NCBI RefSeq assembly: GCF_037042905.1
Contig: NC_087247.1
Span: forward strand, 13,392,001-13,456,000
Length of the DNA: 64,000 nt
From: Lytechinus pictus
Taxonomy: Eukaryota
Direction: 5' to 3'
In this document: one piece after another, positions 44,266-58,146 of the stretch
Layout of the letters: every line of letters begins with the position of its first letter
Numbering within the stretch: the first letter of the stretch is position 1
Translations under genes and position numbers: made by a program
The notes under the pieces: model-generated
What the model was told of the DNA's origin: nothing
The model's database searches: none
The model's input: only the letters and a program-made list of their open reading frames with translations

Positions 44266-44881
44266 ATGACCAAGCCAAGGCAACCTAGGCCTATAAATGG
44301 TTGGATGGCATCATCCGGGCACGACACATTGCTACAGTACCCAATACCAGGTAGTACGGTCCGAGCCAGGAAAAGCAAAAGACGGCCTCCCCATACAGAC
44401 CCACCGACGGCCATGGCCACCTCACTCAGTCCTCGTTCATTACATAACGACAGAGTCTCGTCCCTGTCGATGCCGACGAACATGCTGTCCCCTCGTAGCT
44501 TCCAACCATCCGAGGTGTCCCCAAGGACAATGGCCGCTGCTTCCCAGCAGCTCCATGACCTGACCCGCGAACAGTACCAGGAGAGGAGACGACCACGTCA
44601 GATCATCTTCTACCGCAACGGTGACCGATTCTTCAAGGGGAAGAAGATGTTGATAACGCCGCATCGCTACACTTCGTTTGAAGACCTTCTGAGTGACCTG
44701 ACGCGGAACATGAAGCTCCCTTACGGCGTAAGACAGATCTTTACGCCAGATGGGACGAAGGTCAGAGACATTGAGGAACTCAAGAACGGAGAGTCCTATG
44801 TCTGTGCTTCTTTTGAGAGGTTGAAGAAATTGAAGTATGCATCTTCTACAGGATTTCCTGGTTGGAATACAGGGTCCCAAA
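44266..44881 (+). CDS. DCLK3: DCLK coding exon 1 (N-terminus and DCX domain 1: [13 protein letters not shown]...[13 protein letters not shown]...GESYVCAS)
   Basis: Classic DCX signature. Strong acceptor at 44196 with an in-frame stop upstream of the ATG. a|gtaagt donor. Confidence 0.88.
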
Positions 44882-47800: not shown

Positions 47801-50800
47801 AAAGTACCCCGGTACTTTCTCCCCCTCTTTACTCATTTCTATATTCACAACACTTGATGAATTTTCAATGAAACCCGTTTGATTTTTCATATTTATTGAA
47901 ATCAACCTGCTGTCGAATGAATAGACTGGGCATAAAAAAAAAATTATAGACTTGAAGAGTCAAGTAGAATACAAAGCATGGTGATTTCTATTTCCCCATC
48001 CTGTAGACCTATTAATTGTATACCATGCTTGATGTATGATGTCAATCGCCCATCTCATTCCACTTAAGATGGAACTTTTGCAAGCCGGTTCAAACAAGAA
48101 AGAATATTTTTATAGAGTACAAACAATGTTATATTTGCCAAAGTGCTTATAAAACGATGAAATCTTTTTCAACTATCCACTTGTATTTTGTGACTTCTCC
48201 TACATGTAACACAGGGTCTGCATGTACTCTCGTGCTACTAAAGTGCTCATTATCATAGGATATACTCAGTGGAAACGTGGCTTCTTTGTGGTTTCATTTT
48301 ATTTTTGCGACAGAAATGGGTGAATTTTGCACAAAGATATTCGTTAGGACTGTTGATGAAATAAACGTTGCCCATGCATAGTGTGAACGACATGTATAGT
48401 GCTACCATCAAGCATGCACATTTGAAAAGTGGATTTATTTAATGCTGAAAATGTCAAATGGACATCCAATCTACTTTAAGAAATATGTATGGGGTAGGCA
48501 ACAAAAATGCTGTCGTCGCTGCACTTGTGCCTGTCAAGGTAATTAAAAAAAAACTTACCTACAGTACACGTACATATTTATATGTATTTTTATCAGTGAT
48601 TTTTAATACTTAGACTGTGTTCCTTTGTTATTTTGTTTGCTCCCTTTTCATTTGAGCACTATGAGCATCTGTAATGAGAAGGATTTGGTGCGTTTTGAAT
48701 TGCATTCATTATTATTATCATCATCATCATTACCATCATTATTATTATTATTGTCATTATCATTATTATCATTATTATTATCATTATTATTATTGGGATT
48801 GCTGCGGAAATTCCCAACATTTGAGGAAAGACGTCTGAAATTGCAACCGAATGCCCCCCCCCCAAAAAAAAAAAATTGATTAGTATACCTCACTCAACAA
48901 GTTGTATTTGTGCTTTTGACTTGTCTCATGACCCATTTATTGATGATCAATCAGGGTCTGTGCCTGCAGACTACCTTGGATTATGCTAGCTATGATATAA
49001 TTATTGCATCGATAAAAATGTAGCAATTTGCTTTTTCTAGCCTTGTGCTTGAATCAGTATGCCTACATTTGTAAAACTAAGCAATCGGCTGTGAGGGAAA
49101 GTTTAAGATTGCAGCCATCTTAAACCATGGAAATGTCTATTTACTCACATGTTGTTTTATCACTGTTGACAAAGAAAGGGGGTTGAATCAATATTTGATC
49201 ATTTCCATAAAAGGGCCCAGTGGGATGATAATACATGTACACATATAGAAAAGTTTCCAGATTGACATTAGAATGTCACTGAAATTTTATATCCGATATC
49301 AATCCATTCCAAAATTCACAAATGATATAGCACCACTTGTAATCTTGAAGGAAAATACAGACTAATTTCATTTGGTGTGAATCTCCCAACCTGCTTGTTG
49401 ACTGTTCATGTCCACTACAGCAGCTTATGTGTTGTATCGATGGCAACCACTTGCACAAGGACTAGGAATGTGCCATAGGACAAACATGGGCTTGCACTAC
49501 TTTATTGGCATTTGTCAATAGCTCTGCAACTCAGCCTCTTGTGTGAAGGAAATATCCCATGACAACAAAACCAATACCCCAAAAACAAACACTTGAGCTT
49601 TGTTTAATACTTCATATTATTAAGATGTACTTGAGATTTGGTTTAATTGGTGTTGGATAATGATGGGATCGGGATCGTTTTTTCCTTGAACTCATTTCCT
49701 TTGATTTCTGTGGATCGATACTTCTGTAATTCATTCACTTATCCTGGATCATGATTAGGAGATGTATTGGAACAAGAATAGGAGACTACTTTTGACATGT
49801 TAGTTTCTCAGACTATAAAAGTTTTTTCATATAATTCTGTGAATATACATTAATTTTGTAACTATTTTGTTCGAACGTACAGGGTCTATATCAATTCTAG
49901 GCCATCAGAGGCCTTGGCATTGGATGCCTTGTTTATTGGCCTCAATGCTATCTTCATTGGCCTTGGATATTGTTGTGACCTTCTTAATTTGTCTAATTTG
50001 TGCTGTTATTAAGAAATATGATCTGTAGAACAATGGCCTTACCCTGAATATGTCAAAATTAAAAGGCTGAATTATGTATAACGTGACTGCCTATGATATT
50101 TACTCAATTCCAATGAAATTGTGATAGAAATCCACTAGACTGAGATATATTCGAAAATGATATCCACTTTTGAATATTTATCTTTGAATTTATTTCTTAT
50201 TTCTGCTTGGCATTTGTCTCTTACCAATATTCCAATCTTTTTGTCTTCCCATTTGCAGGGAGAGATCCAAAGAGTGATGCACATCTCTACACCCACATAC
50301 CTGTTGGGTTATCCTACCCGACCGAAGGAAAGTATGCAGAGATGTACGGCAGGACTACCTTTGGTTCCGGTCACACCGGCCCAGGCTCCTTTGCCCATCA
50401 TAGGAATAAAGCTGGAGCAAGTCTTGATGGAGATTCCAAAGCGTTGGGCATCCTTCATTCAGACCGAAGCCCCATCAAGCCAAGAGTGGTCAAGATTGTC
50501 AAGACTGGACCCAAGCCTAGGAAGATGGTGTCTCTGCTGATCAACAAACGTAGTGTACAGTCTTACGAACAATTGATCCAGGATGTCTCAGATGCCTTTG
50601 GCCTGCCAAAGTACAAGAACAACAGGGTACGGAAGCTGTATACGGTGAAAGGGAAGGAAGTGAAAAGCCTCGTTGATTTTTATAGAGACAAGGAGGGAGT
50701 GTTTATTGCATCGCCATCTAGAAGCAGCCTCTCGGAGGATACTTTTCTTGACATTTATGAAGAGCTCTTCCCAGACAGTCCGTACGCCCAGAATTTCCGT

Positions 50801-53800
50801 AAGAGGAAAGGTAAAAAGAAAGATGGAGCAAAACATGATAGTGGAATAAGTGATGAGGAAGTCAAGATAGGAAAGAACAAAAGAGACAGAAATAAACTGA
50901 AGGACAGTGATTCAAGGTTGAACGATAGCAGGGGGTCAGATTTGACAATCGATAGTTTAAATGTTAATCAAAAGGACAGTGATTGGAAGAGGGAGGAGGA
51001 ATTGGAGAGGAGAAGGAAGGAATTGGAGGAGAGAATGCAGGGAGATATCAAGAAAAAGGAATCCGAGTTACAACAGAGAGAAGAAGAATTACGATTAAAG
51101 GAAGAAGAGTTGAAGATGAAGGAGCAGGGTGAACGAGAGAGGAAGGACAGAGAGCGAGAAGATGAACTGGCAAGAAAAGAGGCAGAATTGAAAGCAAAGG
51201 AGGAAGAATTGAAGAGAAGAGAGAAAAAAGAGGGGCAGAAGCTGCAGGAACTCCTAGAAGCTGATGCACAGCGTAAAATAGAGGAAGCCAGGTTGAAAGC
51301 ACAAGCTCTGGCAGAGAGAGAAGCCAGGGAAGCAGCGGAAAGGAGAGCAGCGAATGAAACATCAAGGAGAGAGGAAGCAGAGAGAAATGCAAAGCTTGAG
51401 ATTGAGAAGAGGAAAAGAGATGAAGAAGATCTCAAAAGAAAAGAAGAAGCAGAGAGGAGAGGAAGACTTGAAGCAGAAATAAATGTCAAAGAAAAAGAAG
51501 CAAGGAGAGCATCAGCAGAGAGGAGGGCACGCGAGGAAGCGGAGAAGAGGATCCAACAAGAACAAAGGCTCAAGGAGAAAGAAGAGGCAGAACGAGAAGC
51601 GAGAGAGGCAGAGAAGTTGGCCAGGGAGGAAGCACAAAGCAGGGCTCTCTCAGAGAAACAAGCAAGGGATGAAGCCGAGAGGAAAGCAGAAGAAGCGCTT
51701 CGATACAAAGAGGGACAGGAGGAAGAACGCAAGAAACGAGAAGCAGAAAGACTTGCACGGCTTGAGGCTGACCTGAGGAAGGAAGTGGAAAGACGTGCAG
51801 AGGAGGATTCCAACCAGAAGGATTCTCCTTCTCCTGACTCTCAAACCGATGCCAATGATAACATTGTCTACAAACAAGATGAAAGTAACACTCCTACTCC
51901 AGAAACACCTGAAGAAAGATTCATCCACCAGCCTAGAACTCTTGTCAAGAAGTCTGATATCTTGGTGAAATATGATATCGGGGCTAAGATTGGTGATGGA
52001 AACTTTGCCGATGTCCATGAAGCCACCAAGAAGGAGACAGGGGATGTGTTTGCCATGAAGGTCATCGAGAAGGCAAAGGTTAAGAACAAAGAACACATGG
52101 TGGAAAATGAGATTGCTATTATGAAGCATGTTCGTCATCCCAACATCGTAAGGCTGTACGAGGAGTACGAGACTCGGGGCCATATCTACCTTGTGATGGA
52201 GTACGTAACCGGAGGTGATCTCTTTGATGCTATCACAGAGAGTGTCAAGTTCACAGAAAGAGATGCTGCTCTGATGGTGACTGACCTTGCCAAGGCCCTC
52301 AAGTACCTTCATGACCTGAATGTCGTCCATCGTGATCTGAAGCCTGAGAACTTGCTGGTAAGTCCAAGGAAGAGAAATCATAATCAGAGGCTTGTTTCAT
52401 AAAGAGTTAATTGTAACTTTTCCATTTATGGCAACTACTATAACAGGGCTCAGCAGCTAATCACTCTCATGTTTTCTATGGAAGTTACAATAACGACTAA
52501 ATTTACGAAAACTGTCAGTCTTTATGAAACAGGCCCCTGGAGTCCATTACATAAAACCTACTGTAATGGCAAGTTTGCAGTTACTCTTCATGGAATAGTT
52601 GCTATGGAGCAATATGCCAATAAAAATCTGGTATTCTATGAAGAAATAGTTTGATTGCAAATTACTATTATAGTAATTTTTTATGTGGTTCTTTTCAAGT
52701 CCTGGAGTATGTTCATCAAGTCTTAGAGTATGTTTGTTTTACATTTAGGCACTTGTCTAAAGTCATAATGGAGTAGCATTCCTCTGAAATGCAGTAACAG
52801 TGTCATCAATTAGGATGGCATTATTTAAAATTCTGTTGTGATTCATTCACCTTGACTGACATAAATGCAATTGATATTGTTTGTACTGTGATCTGTTTAA
52901 TGAATATGTATGCTGACATTGGAAGAAATGGAATAATTTAATTTCAAACCATTTCAGGGTTCCCACAGTCATGGAAAATCCTGGAAAAAATTTGTGGTCA
53001 TGGAAAGTCAGGGAATTTGAAAAATTTGTTAAAAGTCATGGAATTGCATTTACCTCTTGGCTATGGCAGCTTTCCAGTTTGCCGTGTCTCGCAACTCTCA
53101 TACTCTGCTATCATAATTGGTGTTCATGATTTCCATTTTTCCCATTTTTGTGACATCTCAAATTCTACATAACTCCCGCGACTTCACAGGAAGTCATGGA
53201 AAGCAGCAATTAAGTCATGGAAAGTAATGGAATTCTGTATTCAAATTTCTGTGGGAACCCTGCATTTCCTTCATACATTTTCTTTGATTTGTGTCTCTTA
53301 AAAAATATGATCTGTTCATGATCAAGTAGTGTACCGTATGGGTACTAGTATTCAACCCGGTATAATTCAAAGATTTTGACATATTCCCCAAAATATTTAG
53401 AAATAGGGAATTTATCTTAATTTCACACCTTTGTTATTTCCAGGGTAATCTGTTGTCGATATTTTCTTTGTCAATCTGTCGACTGTATGCGCGGAGGATC
53501 GAATTATGCGGCGATGGCCTTTTGCACTGAATGGTACTAGTATTCAACCTAGTGAGGATTGATAGCAAATCTCAAAAGGGTTTAGATTGCTAAATTAGAT
53601 CTAGATCTATGTAAATCTCTGGCTTTGATTAATTCCCTGTTTGGTCTCATCTCAAATGGTCTAGTCCATAGTCGGATGGGACAAGGGCAGATTGAGAGAT
53701 AGGGCCATCTTTCATCGCTAGGTTGAATACTAGTGCCGACGGGTTGAATACTAGTACCAAAATCCGTCGCCGTATAATTCGATCGCCCGCGCACACAGTC

Positions 53801-56800
53801 AACTGGTTGAAGAAAAAAATAACGGAAAAAGAATAACCAGCATTTGCTCTTGGAAATAAGACGAGTCTGAAATTCAGGTAAATTCTATATTTCTATATAT
53901 TTTAGGAAACTCTCCAAACGGGTTGAATACTAATGCCCTTACGGTACATGTATTTGTTGACTGTGAATGTAGCTGTAACTACATGTGTAATCTCATTCTG
54001 AATCGTTTGTGTTTAGGTGAACAAATCCGAGTCGGGGGAGATAACCCTGAAGCTTGCTGACTTTGGTCTTGCGATGGAAGTGAAGGCACCTATCTATACT
54101 GTGTGTGGCACACCCACCTATGTGGCACCTGAGATCCTGGGAGAGACAGGTATTTAGATGTGCTTGTTGTTGAATCCATGAAACTTGCTCAGTGACAATT
54201 GCTTCCATGGATTCATCTGTACACAGAGACACCAACCCTCCTGATTCCATCTTAAGCCCCCCCCCCCAAAAAAAAAAATGGCCCCAACTCTCAACTTTAC
54301 TATCACCGACTTTAAATCGTGCCAGAAAAAGCATGTTTAGATACTTGGTATTGTGTTAGTTTTTTAACATGTCACTACTGCAAAACAAGGCTCAGATTGC
54401 ACCAGAGAGCATCTGCATGTAGCAACCCAGAGCTCTCAGTTCCTGACTTAGGATCCAAGCAACACAATTGGATGTCAGTTCCAAATCCTATATTGTTATT
54501 TCCAAAAGTTGGCATCTCTGCCGTACATTGAGCTTCAGATGAATCCCAACACTAACCCTAACTTACACATTATTTAGAACCAAACTATACTGTCACAACA
54601 CCAATACCAGCCCTTTTGTCTTCAGAAAAATTGATGCAGGGATGGTTGTTGCAGGAACATATCGTCAGTGATTTTACGAACCGGCTCAAACCTGATTTTC
54701 GATCAAATTTTTGGAATTTATTTGTTTGCATTTCTGAAAGCCCTTGATTCGCTCTATTGATTTGCCAAATTTCAGATTAAAATTTTTAGTATTTAAAGAA
54801 TAAGAGCATATTTAATTTTCTTACGAACTGGCTCAACCCCCTCCTTTTATTTTTACGAACTGTTTCAAACCATTCTTTGTGTACTATACAGTCTATGTTA
54901 TGGCGCGCGTAGGTCAAAGGCCCGACCTAGATGCTGTGCGTATGTGGTTTGTGCTGATAAAAATCATGCACATGGCATGATTTTACGAACTGGCTCAAAC
55001 CCCCTGTTTTGGGTAAAAATTAGTAGCTTCTGAAATGCATACATGCGCTTCATGTCAAATATTGAAAGAATGAATACGAATTACGAACAAAATGTTGTAT
55101 ATGTATGCTTTAAATTGGTATAAATATTTGATCTTGTTTTATTCAAAACGCGGAGTTATGAGCATTTGAAGAACATCCAAACTTTGAATGCGATTTTCTC
55201 AAAATCATGTTTTGGAAAACCATGCGAGGTTTGAGCCAGTTCATAAAATCACTGACGATATGTCGGGTCAGCATATATATGCCTACTACAAAAGGCACAT
55301 TTAAAAGTAATAGTTCACTTTAAGATCTGTAAAATTGACTTTCAAAAATCTTGATTTTTTTTCATTTACAACATAAAGCTGTTTTTATTTGTTGTGTGTA
55401 TGTTTGTGTATATCTTTCAGGATTCATAATGCTGACTGTCCTTCCTCTCGCTCTCTGCGTGCATCTTTCTGTCTGTCTCTCTCCCCATACCTGATAGCCA
55501 AGATTCATGCAATATGATGCTAACCAGGTCCAGTAACACAAAGTTTAGCGATTGATTGTATGCTTGATTTTCACGATTGATTATAGTCAATGCAATCAAT
55601 CAGAGAAAAATGTTCTACGATCGTTGCTAAGCTTTGTGTTACGGGCCCCAGAACATTATCTCATTGAAATTGTTTATATTTGATGTGTTTGTATTCTTGT
55701 AGGATACGGTTTGGAGGTCGACATGTGGGCGATAGGAGTCATCACTTACATCCTGCTGTGTGGATTCCCGCCATTCCGGAGCCCAGATAGAGACCAAGAA
55801 GAACTCTTTGAACTCATCCAAGCAGGAGAATTCTCTTACGTCTCACCTTACTGGGATAACATCTCCTCAGGTTGGTGCATTTTTAAAGGACAAGTCCACC
55901 CCAACAAAAAATTGATTTGAATAAAAAGAGAAAAATCCAACAAGCATAACACTGAATATTTCATCAAAATTGGATGTAAAATAAGAAAGTTATGACATTT
56001 TAAAGTTTTGCTTAATTTCACAATATGCACATCCTGGTCGGTATGCAAATGAGGAGACTGATGACATCATCCACTCAATATTTCTTTTGTATTTTATTGT
56101 ATGAAATCTTCTAATTTTCTCCTCATTGTCAAGTGAAACAACGATTAATCCTCCCTGAACTTGTGGAATTAGCATTATTTAATACCTTATGGTTCAGTCA
56201 AGTTGGTCCTTATTGTCAAACCTGTAAAAATGAAATATTGTATAATTCAAACAATAAAAAACAAAAGAAATAGTGTGTGATGGACATCATCGACTGTCTC
56301 ATTTGCATGTCACTGAGTTGTGCATATAACTATTTTGTGAAAAATAAGCAAAACTTTAAAATGCCATGATAACTTTCTTATTTTACATCCGATTTTGATA
56401 AAATTTTCAGCGTTATGCTAGTTTGATTTTTCTCTTTTTATTCCAATCAACATTCTTCTGGGGTGGACTTGACCTTTAATCATTCTCCAAGAGCAAGTCC
56501 ACCTCAACTAAAAGTTGATTTGCATGAAAAGAGAAAAAAAATTAAACAAAAAATAATACTTAAAAATTTCATCTAAATTGGATGTGAAATAGAGAGTTAT
56601 GGCATTTAAAATTTTGCTTAAATCTATCAAAGCAGTTATATCCAAGTTCGTGTACAAATGACGTCAGCCAGGCACTTTTTTCTTTTGTATGTTATCATGT
56701 AAGAAATTAAATACCTTTTTTCCGCTCTTAATGTGAAATAAGTTTTGATTCCTCCTTGAATAGATGGGATTGCTATTGATTCAGTCAGTCTCAGTTTTTA

Positions 56801-58146
56801 ATCTCATTTCATTTTCTCATTTCCAGCAAGTACGAAATTCATACAGATATAAAATTAAATGAAATGAAATTTGGCAATTAATTAAAGTAGAATACTTCCA
56901 ATTTAACTTTTCTTTTATAAATTTGAAACCGAAATGAATAAATACTCATTGCAATCCAAAAATAAAAGAAACTATCACTAAATTAATACTGTTTAGAAAT
57001 TTTTTCAACATGCTTTGATTCAATGGAGATGTTTCCTTATTGTCAACTAAATAAAAAAAAAATGAAATATGATATATTTCTTATAATAAAATACAAAAGA
57101 AATAGTGAGTGTGTGATGTCTACTTTCTAATTTGCATATGAACCTCATCATGCATATAACTGTTTTTGTGAAAAGAAGTGAAACTTTATAATTTTATAAT
57201 TTTCAATATTTAACATCAGATTTTGATGAATATCCAGCATTATGTTTGTTTAAATCAGCATTTTGTAGGGGTGATATTTTTCTTTTAAACTTTAGAATTT
57301 CATACATTTCAATATTTGACATCAGATTTTAATGAATATTCAGCATTACCGGTATGCTTGTTTGTATTTCTTATTTGTTCAAATCAACTTTTTGATGGTG
57401 TTGATAAGGTCTAGTCATTATTCCATTCTTGAAATGAGGGTGGTGTTAGAACTGACCTCTAAATTAATTAAATAGATGTATTTCCCATTGTTCATATTGA
57501 AAGTTTTATGTATAAAGTTATATAAATATAAAGTTTTATTGGATGCTGTCAGATGTTGCAAGTATCACAGTTAATGTTGGTGATCTATTGGGATTTTACC
57601 CATTCAAGAACACTAACCCCTCGGGATTGGGGAAATTGTTATTTCAAGTTCAGTGCACATATCCCCCCCCAAAAAATAATAATAAAAATACTCATAACTC
57701 CTCCAATTCTTCTCTATCTATCTATCTATCAATCGCTCTATCTATCTATTTAATCTATCTATCTATCTTTTTAATCTATCTTTCTTTCTCACAAGCTCTT
57801 ATCCATGATTGATCACATATTAATCAGTACCTCTCTGATCTTCCAAATTTGTTCCTTTGAAATAATTTATTCCTTTTTCATTTCCATAAACTTACTTTTC
57901 ATCATTAACCACTATGATTTTTTTTTCTTCCCTGTTCCAGCTGCCAAGGATCTTATAAACCACCTCCTCGTGGTCGATAAAGAGAAACGCTACACAGCTG
58001 GTCAGGTTCTCAAACATCCGTGGGTCACCAGCGAGGGCGCTGCAGGCAAACAAATCAACCTGCAGCGGGAGGTGTCGATGAACCTTGAGAAGAACTTTAA
58101 GGATCGACGGAGTGCGAAACGGAAGCCAGTCGCTCCCAAGAACTGA
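44266..58146 (+). CDS. DCLK3: Doublecortin-like Ser/Thr kinase, DCLK3-type kinase domain; 2 DCX domains plus long charged helix; ~1073 aa
   Basis: join(44266-44881,50259-52357,54017-54149,55703-55870,57941-58146) = 3222 nt, in frame. Motifs [42 protein letters not shown] and YGLEVDMW...[15 protein letters not shown] (DCLK3-like). Start codon uncertain (44266 or a later Met). Confidence 0.85.
50259..52357 (+). CDS. DCLK3: DCLK coding exon 2 (DCX domain 2, E/R/K-rich linker, kinase N-lobe to HRD)
   Basis: tttgcag acceptor, ctg|gtaagt donor; 2099-nt open exon. Confidence 0.92.
52955..53262. mobile_element. MITE with CAGGGTTCCCACAG TIRs and repeated gtcatggaa subterminal motifs
   Basis: cattt|cagggttcccacag ... 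ctgtgggaaccctg|cattt. Confidence 0.8.
53334..53944. mobile_element. Tc1/mariner-type MITE (TA TSD, CCGTA termini)
   Basis: ta|ccgtatgggtactagtattcaacccg ... cgggttgaatactaatgcccttacgg|ta; internal copies of the TIR motif. Confidence 0.8.
54017..54149 (+). CDS. DCLK3: DCLK exon 3 (DFG and activation loop, APE)
   Basis: gtttag acceptor, gtattt donor; [28 protein letters not shown]. Confidence 0.93.
54662..55258. mobile_element. TA-flanked MITE with ~32-bp TIRs
   Basis: ta|tcgtcagtgattttacgaaccggctcaaacct ... aggtttgagccagttcataaaatcactgacga|ta; internal ttacgaactggctcaa repeats. Confidence 0.8.
55526..55649. mobile_element. Short MITE, copy of 8121-8243
   Basis: gtaacacaaagtttagcg ... gctaagctttgtgttacgggccc. 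Confidence 0.75.
55703..55870 (+). CDS. DCLK3: DCLK exon 4 ([24 protein letters not shown]...YWDNISS)
   Basis: ttgtag acceptor, gttggt donor. Confidence 0.93.
55887..56475. mobile_element. Kolobok/T2-type MITE 16 nt downstream of a DCLK donor site
   Basis: TTAA|aggacaagtccacccc ... ggggtggacttgacct|TTAA; reverse copy of 12203-12774. Confidence 0.88.
56490..57290. mobile_element. Older decayed copy of the same Kolobok-type family
   Basis: caagtccacctcaac start; aaatacaaaagaaatagtgagtg and other shared blocks. Confidence 0.65.
57941..58146 (+). CDS. DCLK3: DCLK last coding exon ([28 protein letters not shown]...PKN*)
   Basis: ttccag acceptor; kinase subdomain XI, short basic tail, TGA. Confidence 0.92.

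Follow-up and report, generated by a model that had tools for sequence, protein, structure and literature searches.

A predicted single alpha-helix linking the DCX and kinase domains of a DCLK3-type protein in Lytechinus pictus

We report that an expressed DCLK3-type kinase of the sea urchin Lytechinus pictus carries a segment that is most likely a single alpha-helix (SAH) of the ER/K type, about 245-255 residues long, forming a spacer between a pair of DCX domains and a CAMK-type kinase domain. The gene lies in a window of 64,000 nucleotides (assembly GCF_037042905.1, contig NC_087247.1, positions 13,392,001 to 13,456,000 of the forward strand), whose first letter is position 1 in what follows. 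The original prediction, made from the letters of this stretch, had proposed an SAH spacer at this site, and the charge pattern, the lack of a heptad core, the helix predicted by AF2, the presence of the segment in mRNA and its conservation all support that proposal, while the monomeric state of the helix is what we infer.

The gene consists of five exons encoding DCX1, DCX2 and the kinase domain, in a model of 1,073 amino acids (Table 1), and is 97% identical to 'DCLK1-like' of Lytechinus variegatus. L. variegatus protein P0001 can be aligned to the spliced model over the full length, with 1039 of 1064 residues identical. Both DCX domains score above the PF03607 cut-off of 22 bits, and the catalytic motifs are intact in the spliced model (GxGxF, the VAIK-type Lys, an 11-residue motif and APE). 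The C-terminal tail following the HPW motif stays within the limit of about 50 residues given for DCLK3 (Venkat et al., 2023; PMC10602587). The joint between exons 1 and 2 rests on homology rather than on reads, and no GT/AG combination other than the borders given for exon 5 keeps the frame open.

Table 1. Features of the DCLK3-type gene, in positions of the window.
Feature	Position	Strand	Evidence or remarks
Exon 1 (start codon and first DCX domain)	44266..44881	+	tblastn of L. variegatus protein P0001
First DCX domain	44650-44820 (G000:C3:13436650-13436820)	+	PF03607, E 9.4e-20, 80 bits
Exon 2, 2,099 nt (second DCX domain, linker, ER/K helix, linker, kinase N-lobe up to a 10-residue motif)	50259..52357	+	
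Second DCX domain	50537..50713	+	PF03607, E 2.2e-08, 34-39 bits; AF2 pLDDT 79-91
Pre-helix linker, basic, Ser/Asp-rich, predicted disordered	50813..50998	+	AF2 pLDDT <50, exon-2 residues 188-242
Segment of the original prediction	50981..51809	+	predicted helix plus 6 residues before and ~15 after
Predicted ER/K single alpha-helix	50999..51763	+	residues 453-707 of the 1,073-aa model; net charge -2
Post-helix linker, acidic, Pro/Ser/Thr-rich, predicted disordered	51764..51946	+	AF2 pLDDT <50, residues 511-555
Kinase N-lobe and start of catalytic loop	51971..52357	+	PF00069, E 3.5e-41 (exon 2 alone)
Exon 3 (kinase, DFG and activation segment)	54017..54149	+	spliced reads 52357>54017, 54149>55703; tblastn
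Exon 4 (kinase C-lobe)	55703..55870	+	spliced reads, tblastn, alignment to L. variegatus protein
Exon 5 (kinase end, tail of ~40 residues, stop codon)	57941..58146	+	collinear with P0001

The limits of exon 2 were set by RNA reads together with a 3,303-nt transcript contig, a piece of which matches positions 50259-52356 without any difference. Coverage of this exon was continuous in three stranded RNA-seq runs, the GT..AG joint that links it to exon 3 was present in all the runs, and the joint between exons 3 and 4 is also of the GT..AG type. No splice joint was found inside the segment, either in the stranded reads or in the transcript contig. The location of the segment within one 2.1-kb exon, and between the Pfam matches to the DCX domains and to the kinase, was thus as originally described; the splicing out of the segment, which had been named as an outcome that would speak against the proposal, did not occur in these data, in which one transcript contig spans the whole exon and the segment is kept in mRNA. 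In the post-helix linker, an in-frame 3-nt deletion variant was observed at position 51828 in RNA reads.

Translation of positions 50981-51808 (forward strand) gives 276 residues (E81, R50, A37, K35, L24, Q14, D10, G5), in agreement with the ~275-residue proline-free E/R/K/A stretch announced beforehand, whose quoted strings were all found. E, R and K make up 60% of it, Ala 13% and Leu 9%, with 35 large hydrophobic residues (LIVMFYW, 13%), no Pro and only 5 Gly; the Pro-free run is in fact longer than these limits, extending over 348 residues (50783-51826). Opposite-charge i/i+4 pairs number 103, about twice the 55.4 +/- 5.5 expected from 2,000 shuffles (z 8.7), like-charge i+4 pairs are depleted (18 vs 54.9 in shuffles; z -6.6) and opposite-charge i+3 pairs are enriched (z 2.9), with a charge period of ~7.5 residues (the range used here for SAHs is ~6-9). 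Composition alone does not account for this pattern. It was scored with our own shuffle statistic in place of Waggawagga or SCAN4CSAH; shuffle z-scores and same-genome controls were used, and a first sliding SAH score was dropped because it was uncalibrated and patchy and had an arbitrary threshold. A microsatellite origin or a recent tandem expansion was rejected, since Tandem Repeats Finder gave no sizeable repeat in the segment, only four short arrays of 21-54 nt each. The sole match in a PDB search with the segment sequence was the designed repeat protein 8etq, and a feature search of the ESM Atlas with the helix gave no usable match.

With a 36-sequence alignment, AF2, which also draws coiled-coil monomers as long helices, predicted an unbroken helix over exon-2 residues 247-490 (244 residues) and then 494-501, with pLDDT 63-86. 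Together with this short extension the helix has 255 residues, or ~37-38 nm at 0.15 nm per residue. The pTM was 0.33, the flanks of the helix were disordered and no helix contacts were implied. ESMFold2 gave the segment a pLDDT of ~70.

In a quick IQ-TREE tree of 99 kinase domains, rooted at the midpoint and of moderate support, the kinase domain fell in a DCLK3 clade of 61 tips (SH-aLRT 80) together with urchins, bird, coelacanth and teleost DCLK3, molluscs and Trichoplax, separate from a clade of DCLK2 and insect sequences (SH-aLRT 80). The same genome holds a second, DCLK1/2-like paralogue (G000 C5). Equivalent ER/K blocks were found in most slowly evolving invertebrate DCLK3 orthologues, including those of crinoids, starfish, hemichordates, amphioxus, ascidians, molluscs and a nemertean, and in the oyster orthologue this position is taken by a pair of helices, 44 and 81 residues long. 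Among the sequences compared, the block was absent from DCLK3 of tetrapods, a sea cucumber, octopus, flatworms and rotifers, several helix-less lineages having Ser/Pro/Gly-rich sequence in its place, and from all DCLK1/2-type kinases; the contrast drawn at the outset with the linkers of DCLK1/2 holds for this set, in which those linkers are Ser/Pro/Gly-rich. As far as these orthologues tell, the putative helix is widespread in invertebrate DCLK3 and not an urchin oddity. The length of the block ranges from 93 to 306 residues, being 93-141 in hemichordates and starfish and 250-306 in urchins, crinoids and ascidians. Conservation of length across invertebrate orthologues, which had been put forward as a check, was therefore seen in echinoids, with one 1-residue indel, but not between clades, where length varied and the helix was lost several times. 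Since there is a 3-fold length difference between phyla, along with lineages devoid of the helix, a fixed reach is, judging by these sequences, not essential to the kinase.

Within echinoids, the helix is 96% identical in L. variegatus, 86% in Strongylocentrotus, 75% in a further echinoid and 70% in Diadema, values to be set beside an identity of ~17% that we estimate by chance from composition. That one indel across the four echinoids lies at the break in the AF2 helix. The flanking linkers show 94-98% identity to L. variegatus and 59-77% to the three more distant echinoids, with more indels than the helix, and the pre-helix linker in particular is less conserved and richer in indels. Most amino acid changes in the helix keep the charge, and dN/dS against L. 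variegatus is 0.14. Purifying selection on the sequence of the predicted helix, and within echinoids on its length, is shown by these comparisons. An identity of 70% over the echinoid crown exceeds the need of a generic spacer and hints at sequence-specific partners.

The segment could instead be a coiled coil, forming either a parallel kinase dimer or an antiparallel hairpin that joins the DCX and kinase ends, in the way the dormant ERM alpha-domain folds back on itself. We consider this quite unlikely, in spite of the long helix rich in Leu and Ala. With these two residues adding up to 22%, the segment may have a weak Ala/Leu seam. Within the N-terminal third (exon-2 residues 247-321), a Leu/Ile recurs once per heptad and the local a/d occupancy is up to 0.62, and a weak periodicity of hydrophobic residues plus Ala was detected in echinoid orthologues (z 2.7-3.2, reaching 4.4 in some orthologues; 0.0 in the L. 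pictus sequence itself). Many SAHs were initially annotated as coiled coils, and such misannotation can also run in the reverse direction. However, no canonical heptad core was found, with only exon-2 residues 257-286 reaching 5 of 8 a/d positions, and the hydrophobic residues of the helix lack a 3.5-residue periodicity (z -0.5) and have a mean best a/d occupancy of 0.27, as opposed to z 3.1-4.7 and occupancies of 0.45-0.58 in the coiled-coil control. This control was limited to three myosin-II tail exons of the same genome; a genome scan for tropomyosin (PF00261) gave no match. The low proportion of large hydrophobics and the straight, unbroken AF2 helix, with no hairpin, also argue against a coiled coil, as does an i/i+4 salt-bridge pattern ~3 times denser than in the control. 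The helix has 0.37 opposite-charge i/i+4 pairs per residue (z 8.6); the ER/K exons that precede the IN-box at the INCENP locus of the same genome, which served as a positive control, have 0.23 (z 4.6, a/d 0.31). A homodimer prediction of the segment gave no answer (score 0.00, no controls) and is given no weight in either direction.

Even less probable, in our opinion, is a disordered polyampholyte linker, an entropic tether in which composition and not pattern would matter. Charged low-complexity sequence is often disordered, the pLDDT values of AF2 and ESMFold2 are modest, and both the variable length among phyla and the Ser/Pro/Gly-rich replacements would fit such a tether; but the i/i+4 patterning goes far beyond composition and recurs in nearly every orthologue tested (z 2.2-9.5), Pro is absent and Gly scarce, and the block is nearly free of indels over the echinoid crown and has a low dN/dS, whereas the disordered flanks gain indels. 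The high echinoid identity, above that of the flanking linkers and of chance, and the charge-conserving nature of most changes would also suit a helix that is mainly a binding surface, either a third microtubule-binding element, of the kind formed by the N-terminal portion of the helix in INCENP or MAP7, or a docking site for a specific partner or substrate, and SAH-like helices of INCENP and MAP7 do run along a protofilament (PMC13015866, PMC4571873). This explanation is unlikely, given a cross-phylum identity of 41-49% in the aligned parts and the charge of the helix: it amounts to -2 over 255 residues, every 30-residue window lying between -2 and +2, as against +26 in the ER/K exons of the INCENP locus. 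The helix thus differs from the basic microtubule-binding SAHs of the INCENP/MAP7 type and, because of this difference in net charge, is unlikely to hold on to the acidic microtubule surface by electrostatic attraction.

Returning to the ER/K spacer, the helix, with disordered hinges of ~60 residues on each side, would act as a semi-flexible spacer or spring that holds the kinase off its own microtubule-bound DCX domains, an arrangement that would reduce cis-phosphorylation and give the kinase a working radius of a few tens of nm, with neighbouring tubulin dimers, MAPs or adjacent microtubules within its reach. For this leash function, which we purely infer, the protein could be a one-polypeptide counterpart of the 'dog leash' of INCENP-Aurora B. 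Because ER/K helices are semi-flexible, a reach of roughly 26 nm r.m.s., based on a persistence length of ~15 nm for such helices, is more realistic than the rigid 40 nm first suggested. A more ambitious version, which we put forward only tentatively and regard as doubtful, would make invertebrate DCLK3 a self-contained 'kinase on a ruler' of ancestral bilaterian design, with a monomeric ER/K helix under length selection that sets the phosphorylation radius. The two DCX domains would anchor the protein to the microtubule lattice, and the helix would fix the radius for phosphorylating lattice-bound substrates and suppress cis-phosphorylation of the DCX domains. The basis for length selection would be the 255 residues with one indel across echinoids and the ~250-300 residues in crinoids and ascidians, and vertebrates, holothurians and cephalopods would have swapped the ancestral helix for disordered linkers.

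DCLK3 belongs to the understudied ('dark') kinases, and a spacer of this kind bears on the way DCLKs reach their microtubule substrates. DCLK1 tunes its lattice binding by autophosphorylating its microtubule-binding region (PMC8352597), a feedback whose geometry a long stiff spacer in an ancestral DCLK3 would alter. An ER/K spacer seems to be undescribed for the DCLK family: the helix is not mentioned in the family description of Venkat et al. (2023; PMC10602587), and nothing relevant was found in literature on DCLK, DCLK3 or doublecortin combined with single alpha-helix or SAH, a search that did not extend to the study of sea-urchin DCLKs by Xu et al. (2021, Dev Dyn), which PMC11193195 cites. 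Urchin DCLK3 would be a naturally occurring leash of the INCENP-Aurora B type in a single chain, and the natural length series from sea cucumber (no helix) through hemichordates and starfish to urchins, crinoids and ascidians makes the idea testable. If the helix is a plain spacer, the result would be a useful addition to the annotation of the DCLK family, whose current descriptions lack this conserved domain, with no new principle.

Most myosin SAHs have ~50-100 residues, and the urchin helix differs from them in being several times longer than most, in serving a kinase and not a motor, and in having more Ala and Leu. It resembles the SAHs of myosin VI, myosin X and MyoM and engineered ER/K linkers in composition, salt-bridge pattern and presumed role as a semi-rigid spacer or spring (PMC4183817, PMC5378345), SAHs being known to behave as constant-force springs (PMC4183817). 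With the coiled coil of the myosin-II tail it shares a long, charged, helical nature, for which generic predictors tend to say 'coiled coil', but not the heptad hydrophobic seam, as tested above. Like vertebrate DCLK3, the urchin protein has a kinase of the DCLK3 clade, an N-terminal DCX module and a tail of ~40 residues, and invertebrates have a second, DCLK1/2-like paralogue (Venkat et al., 2023; PMC10602587); it has two DCX domains, unlike 'most' DCLK3s, which have one (PMC10602587), and its linker holds a helix of ~250 residues, while linkers of similar length in tetrapod DCLK3 are not ER/K-patterned.

The closest parallel is the SAH of INCENP, a monomeric leash for Aurora B (PMC4571873), which is also a long ER/K helix (~213 residues in chicken and 263 in human, 533-795, compared with 255 in urchin DCLK3; PMC4571873, PMC13015866). 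In both systems a helix joins a localisation module to a kinase located at or near microtubules. Going by the INCENP locus of the same genome, the two helices have a similar i/i+4 charge pattern and both lack a heptad core; sequence homology between them is absent. The near-neutral urchin helix contrasts with the +26 of the INCENP-locus pieces and with the binding of microtubules by the INCENP SAH itself. The urchin anchor is a pair of DCX domains, in place of Survivin/Borealin, and anchor, helix and kinase form one polypeptide, in contrast to the non-covalent attachment of Aurora B to the IN-box.

The open frame that carries the charged segment has its best protein match in P0001, the Lytechinus variegatus 'serine/threonine-protein kinase DCLK1-like isoform X1' (1,064 aa, 97% identity), followed by the Strongylocentrotus purpuratus 'DCLK3 isoform X2' and by Diadema orthologues. 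The spliced product has 1,073 aa and is collinear with P0001 except for the N-terminus and one residue, while the window and the L. variegatus genomic locus are 97.3% identical in exon 2 and 86-91% in the introns, levels that mark the window as DNA from a species close to L. variegatus or as a diverged haplotype of L. variegatus itself. Location of the segment within a single 2.1-kb exon was confirmed by RNA-seq and a transcript contig. In each of three stranded RNA-seq runs on rRNA-depleted RNA, sense-orientation coverage of exon 2 was unbroken; a transcript contig of 3,303 nt traverses the entire exon with zero differences from the window, and the only joints seen were the GT..AG introns 52357>54017 and 54149>55703. 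Splicing out of the segment, which the original prediction had named as an outcome that would refute it, therefore does not occur in these samples, since it was retained in all three runs with no internal joint.

Features of the DCLK3-type gene and of loci compared with it (window positions unless a contig of G000, the genome scanned for homologous loci, is named)
Feature	Position	Strand	Source or remark
DCLK3-type gene, five exons	44266-44881, 50259-52357, 54017-54149, 55703-55870, 57941-58146	+	
DCX1	44650-44820	+	Pfam / genome scan
DCX2	50537-50713	+	Pfam / genome scan
Charged segment	50981-51808	+	
Predicted helix	50999-51763	+	AF2
Kinase domain	start 51971	+	Pfam / genome scan
Antisense open frame	50968-51813	-	rejected as gene
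Shifted open frame	51483-51776	+	rejected as gene
Candidate alternative first exon	48451-48588		
Inverted repeat, intron 2	52385-52405 / 52519-52539		
Repeat-like intronic stretches	52955-53940, 55516-55712		
Second DCLK gene	G000:C5:54710590-54743072	-	DCX domains 54742566-54743072, kinase exons 54710590-54712274
INCENP locus (L011)	G000:C19:10330000-10339999	-	

The RNA reads contained a 3-nt in-frame deletion variant at 51828, just past the helix, in all three runs (2/3, 7/20 and 2/5 reads), and numerous SNPs relative to the window, which fits high sea-urchin heterozygosity. In S. purpuratus, 'isoform X2' (903 aa) lacks DCX1, and its N-terminus weakly matches one stretch of the window (53% identity); the transcript contig reaches no further than 157 nt beyond the 5' end of exon 2. 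An alternative first exon may give a DCX1-less isoform. Just downstream of the exon-2 donor lies an inverted repeat with 21-nt arms, 90% complementary and separated by 113 nt, and RNA reads of both orientations show 'opposite strands' joints at 52441/52520; the repeat may represent either a small fold-back element or an artefact of the library. Two intronic stretches, covered to very high depth by reads and contigs of both strands and with many loose ends, look like dispersed, transcribed repeats (transposon fragments).

The proline-free, charged nature of the segment was borne out: its 276 residues include E81 R50 A37 K35 L24 Q14 D10, with Gly 5 and Pro 0, and no sizeable tandem repeat was found in its DNA. 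Compared with shuffles of fixed composition, opposite-charge i/i+4 pairs were enriched (103 versus 55.4 +/- 5.5, z 8.7) and like-charge i+4 pairs depleted (18 versus 54.9, z -6.6); i+3 was enriched too (z 2.9), opposite-charge i+7 pairs were depleted (z -5), and charge periodicity peaked at ~7.5 residues. Opposite-charge i/i+4 enrichment with like-charge depletion is the defining pattern of ER/K or charged single alpha-helices (SAHs). Two open frames overlapping the segment, one antisense (281 aa, Ser/Leu/Phe-rich) and one shifted (97 aa, Lys/Arg/Gly-rich), were rejected as genes: they arise as a side effect of the run of purine-rich GAR/AAR/AGR codons, the complements of which cannot form stop codons.

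That the segment forms a coiled coil or hairpin is decidedly unlikely. Large hydrophobics showed no 3.5-residue periodicity in it (z -0.5) and mean best-register occupancy of heptad a and d positions was 0.27, versus z 3.1-4.7 and 0.45-0.58 in three myosin-II tail exons of the same genome, used as coiled-coil control, where opposite-charge i/i+4 pairs per residue were 0.11-0.14 versus 0.37 in the segment. The positive control, ER/K-rich exons upstream of the IN-box at the INCENP locus of this genome (assigned by position only), gave 0.23 pairs per residue (z 4.6) and an occupancy of 0.31, so the DCLK segment is at least as SAH-like. Leu/Ile recur about once per heptad only in the first third of the helix (exon-2 residues 247-321). 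We infer that the helix is monomeric. An unstructured polyampholyte seems slightly less likely than a coiled coil. From the exon-2 product and a 36-orthologue alignment, AlphaFold2 (AF2) predicted a folded DCX2, disorder at residues 188-242, an unbroken helix at 247-490 plus 494-501 (pLDDT 63-86), disorder at 511-555 and then the kinase N-lobe.

Length conservation was found among four echinoid orthologues: the 255-residue block (residues 247-501) is 96% identical to the window in L. variegatus, 86% in Strongylocentrotus, 75% in a further echinoid and 70% in Diadema, with a single 1-residue indel, where AF2 breaks the helix. On either side, the disordered linkers (94-98% identical in L. variegatus, 59-77% in three more distant echinoids) carry more indels. 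Comparison of the helix with L. variegatus counted 15 synonymous and 9 non-synonymous changes, of which 4 exchange K and R, giving a dN/dS of 0.14; the kinase lobe gave 0.04, and the counts are small. The high identity suggests additional sequence-specific constraints, which limits the spacer reading; that the helix is mainly a binding platform, a role compatible with that of a spacer, we consider unlikely.

As to reach, the persistence length is said to have been placed near 15 nm by Sivaramakrishnan et al. in 2009, and on that assumption the r.m.s. end-to-end distance of the helix would be ~26 nm, so a semi-flexible tether fits better than the set reach of the original prediction. Its predicted contour is ~37-38 nm, taking the 0.15 nm per residue that was applied to INCENP (PMC4571873); SAHs also lengthen under low force (PMC4183817). 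The net charge of the helix is -2, every 30-residue window lying within +/-2, versus +26 for the INCENP-locus pieces, which argues against a MAP7/INCENP-like electrostatic microtubule grip. These pieces, five in number, are small open stretches rich in ER/K/Q, each of 42-67 aa and 264 aa in total, all upstream of the IN-box exon, which suggests that many exons share in encoding the urchin INCENP SAH, in contrast to the single-exon DCLK3 helix.

In a kinase-domain tree (99 representatives, quick search, midpoint root) the urchin gene falls inside the DCLK3 clade (61 tips, SH-aLRT 80), with Ambulacraria supported at 96 and a DCLK2+insect clade separate. The Pro-free ER/K block between DCX2 and kinase spans 288-304 aa in urchins, 289-306 in crinoids, 251-252 in ascidians, 211 in amphioxus, about 137 in starfish, 93-117 in hemichordates, 109-193 in bivalves and gastropods and 136 in a nemertean, with short remnants (43-65 aa) in an annelid, lamprey and non-teleost fishes. 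Nearly all blocks >= 90 aa show i/i+4 enrichment (z 2.2-9.5), and AF2 divides the oyster block into two helices of 44 and 81 residues. Among the sequences examined, no such block occurs in DCLK3 of tetrapods or teleosts, nor in a sea cucumber, octopus, flatworms, rotifers or Trichoplax, and all DCLK1/2-type proteins lack it too; their Ser/Pro/Gly-rich linkers agree with the Pro/Ser-rich DCLK1/2 linker cited in the original prediction. The simplest reading of these sequences would be an ancient bilaterian DCLK3 feature, repeatedly lost; the 3-fold length range and repeated losses indicate that no particular reach is indispensable, a further limit to the spacer reading.

Apostichopus japonicus DCLK3 (P0135) and the Octopus orthologue (P0170) have Ser/Pro/Gly/Thr-rich linkers of 344-413 aa with no helix-type block, within clades whose other members possess it; they offer natural 'helix-loss' controls, and the kinase of the sea cucumber lies on a long branch. 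The Branchiostoma lanceolatum DCLK3-like protein (P0014) is unusually Trp-rich at residues about 425-559, where W-R-E-E type motifs recur. Its i/i+4 signal is the weakest of all (z 2.2), and its block may not be a plain SAH. The second DCLK gene, with two DCX domains and a kinase 59% and 48% identical to that of the window in two exons, is presumably the expected DCLK1/2-like paralogue, in agreement with the DCLK3 orthologue and DCLK1/2-like gene reported in invertebrates by Venkat et al. 2023 (PMC10602587).

Related genomes already carry an annotation of this gene, and neither DCLK kinases nor SAH spacers are new; within the literature searched, no paper linked DCLK or DCLK3 to a single alpha-helix or ER/K linker, and the family account of Venkat et al. 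2023 (PMC10602587) makes no mention of this helix. Architecture, expression, charge pattern, predicted helix and constraint are shown here. The helix would keep the kinase tens of nanometres away from its own lattice-bound DCX domains, a separation that would reduce the effective concentration for cis-phosphorylation, which regulates microtubule binding in DCLK1 (PMC8352597), and trans-phosphorylation of neighbours could be possible within a ~25-40 nm radius, more upon helix unfolding under load. Such a role would parallel the INCENP 'dog leash' that tethers Aurora B (PMC4571873), with the differences that anchor, helix and kinase of the DCLK3-type protein form one polypeptide and that its helix is neutral, whereas that of INCENP is basic.
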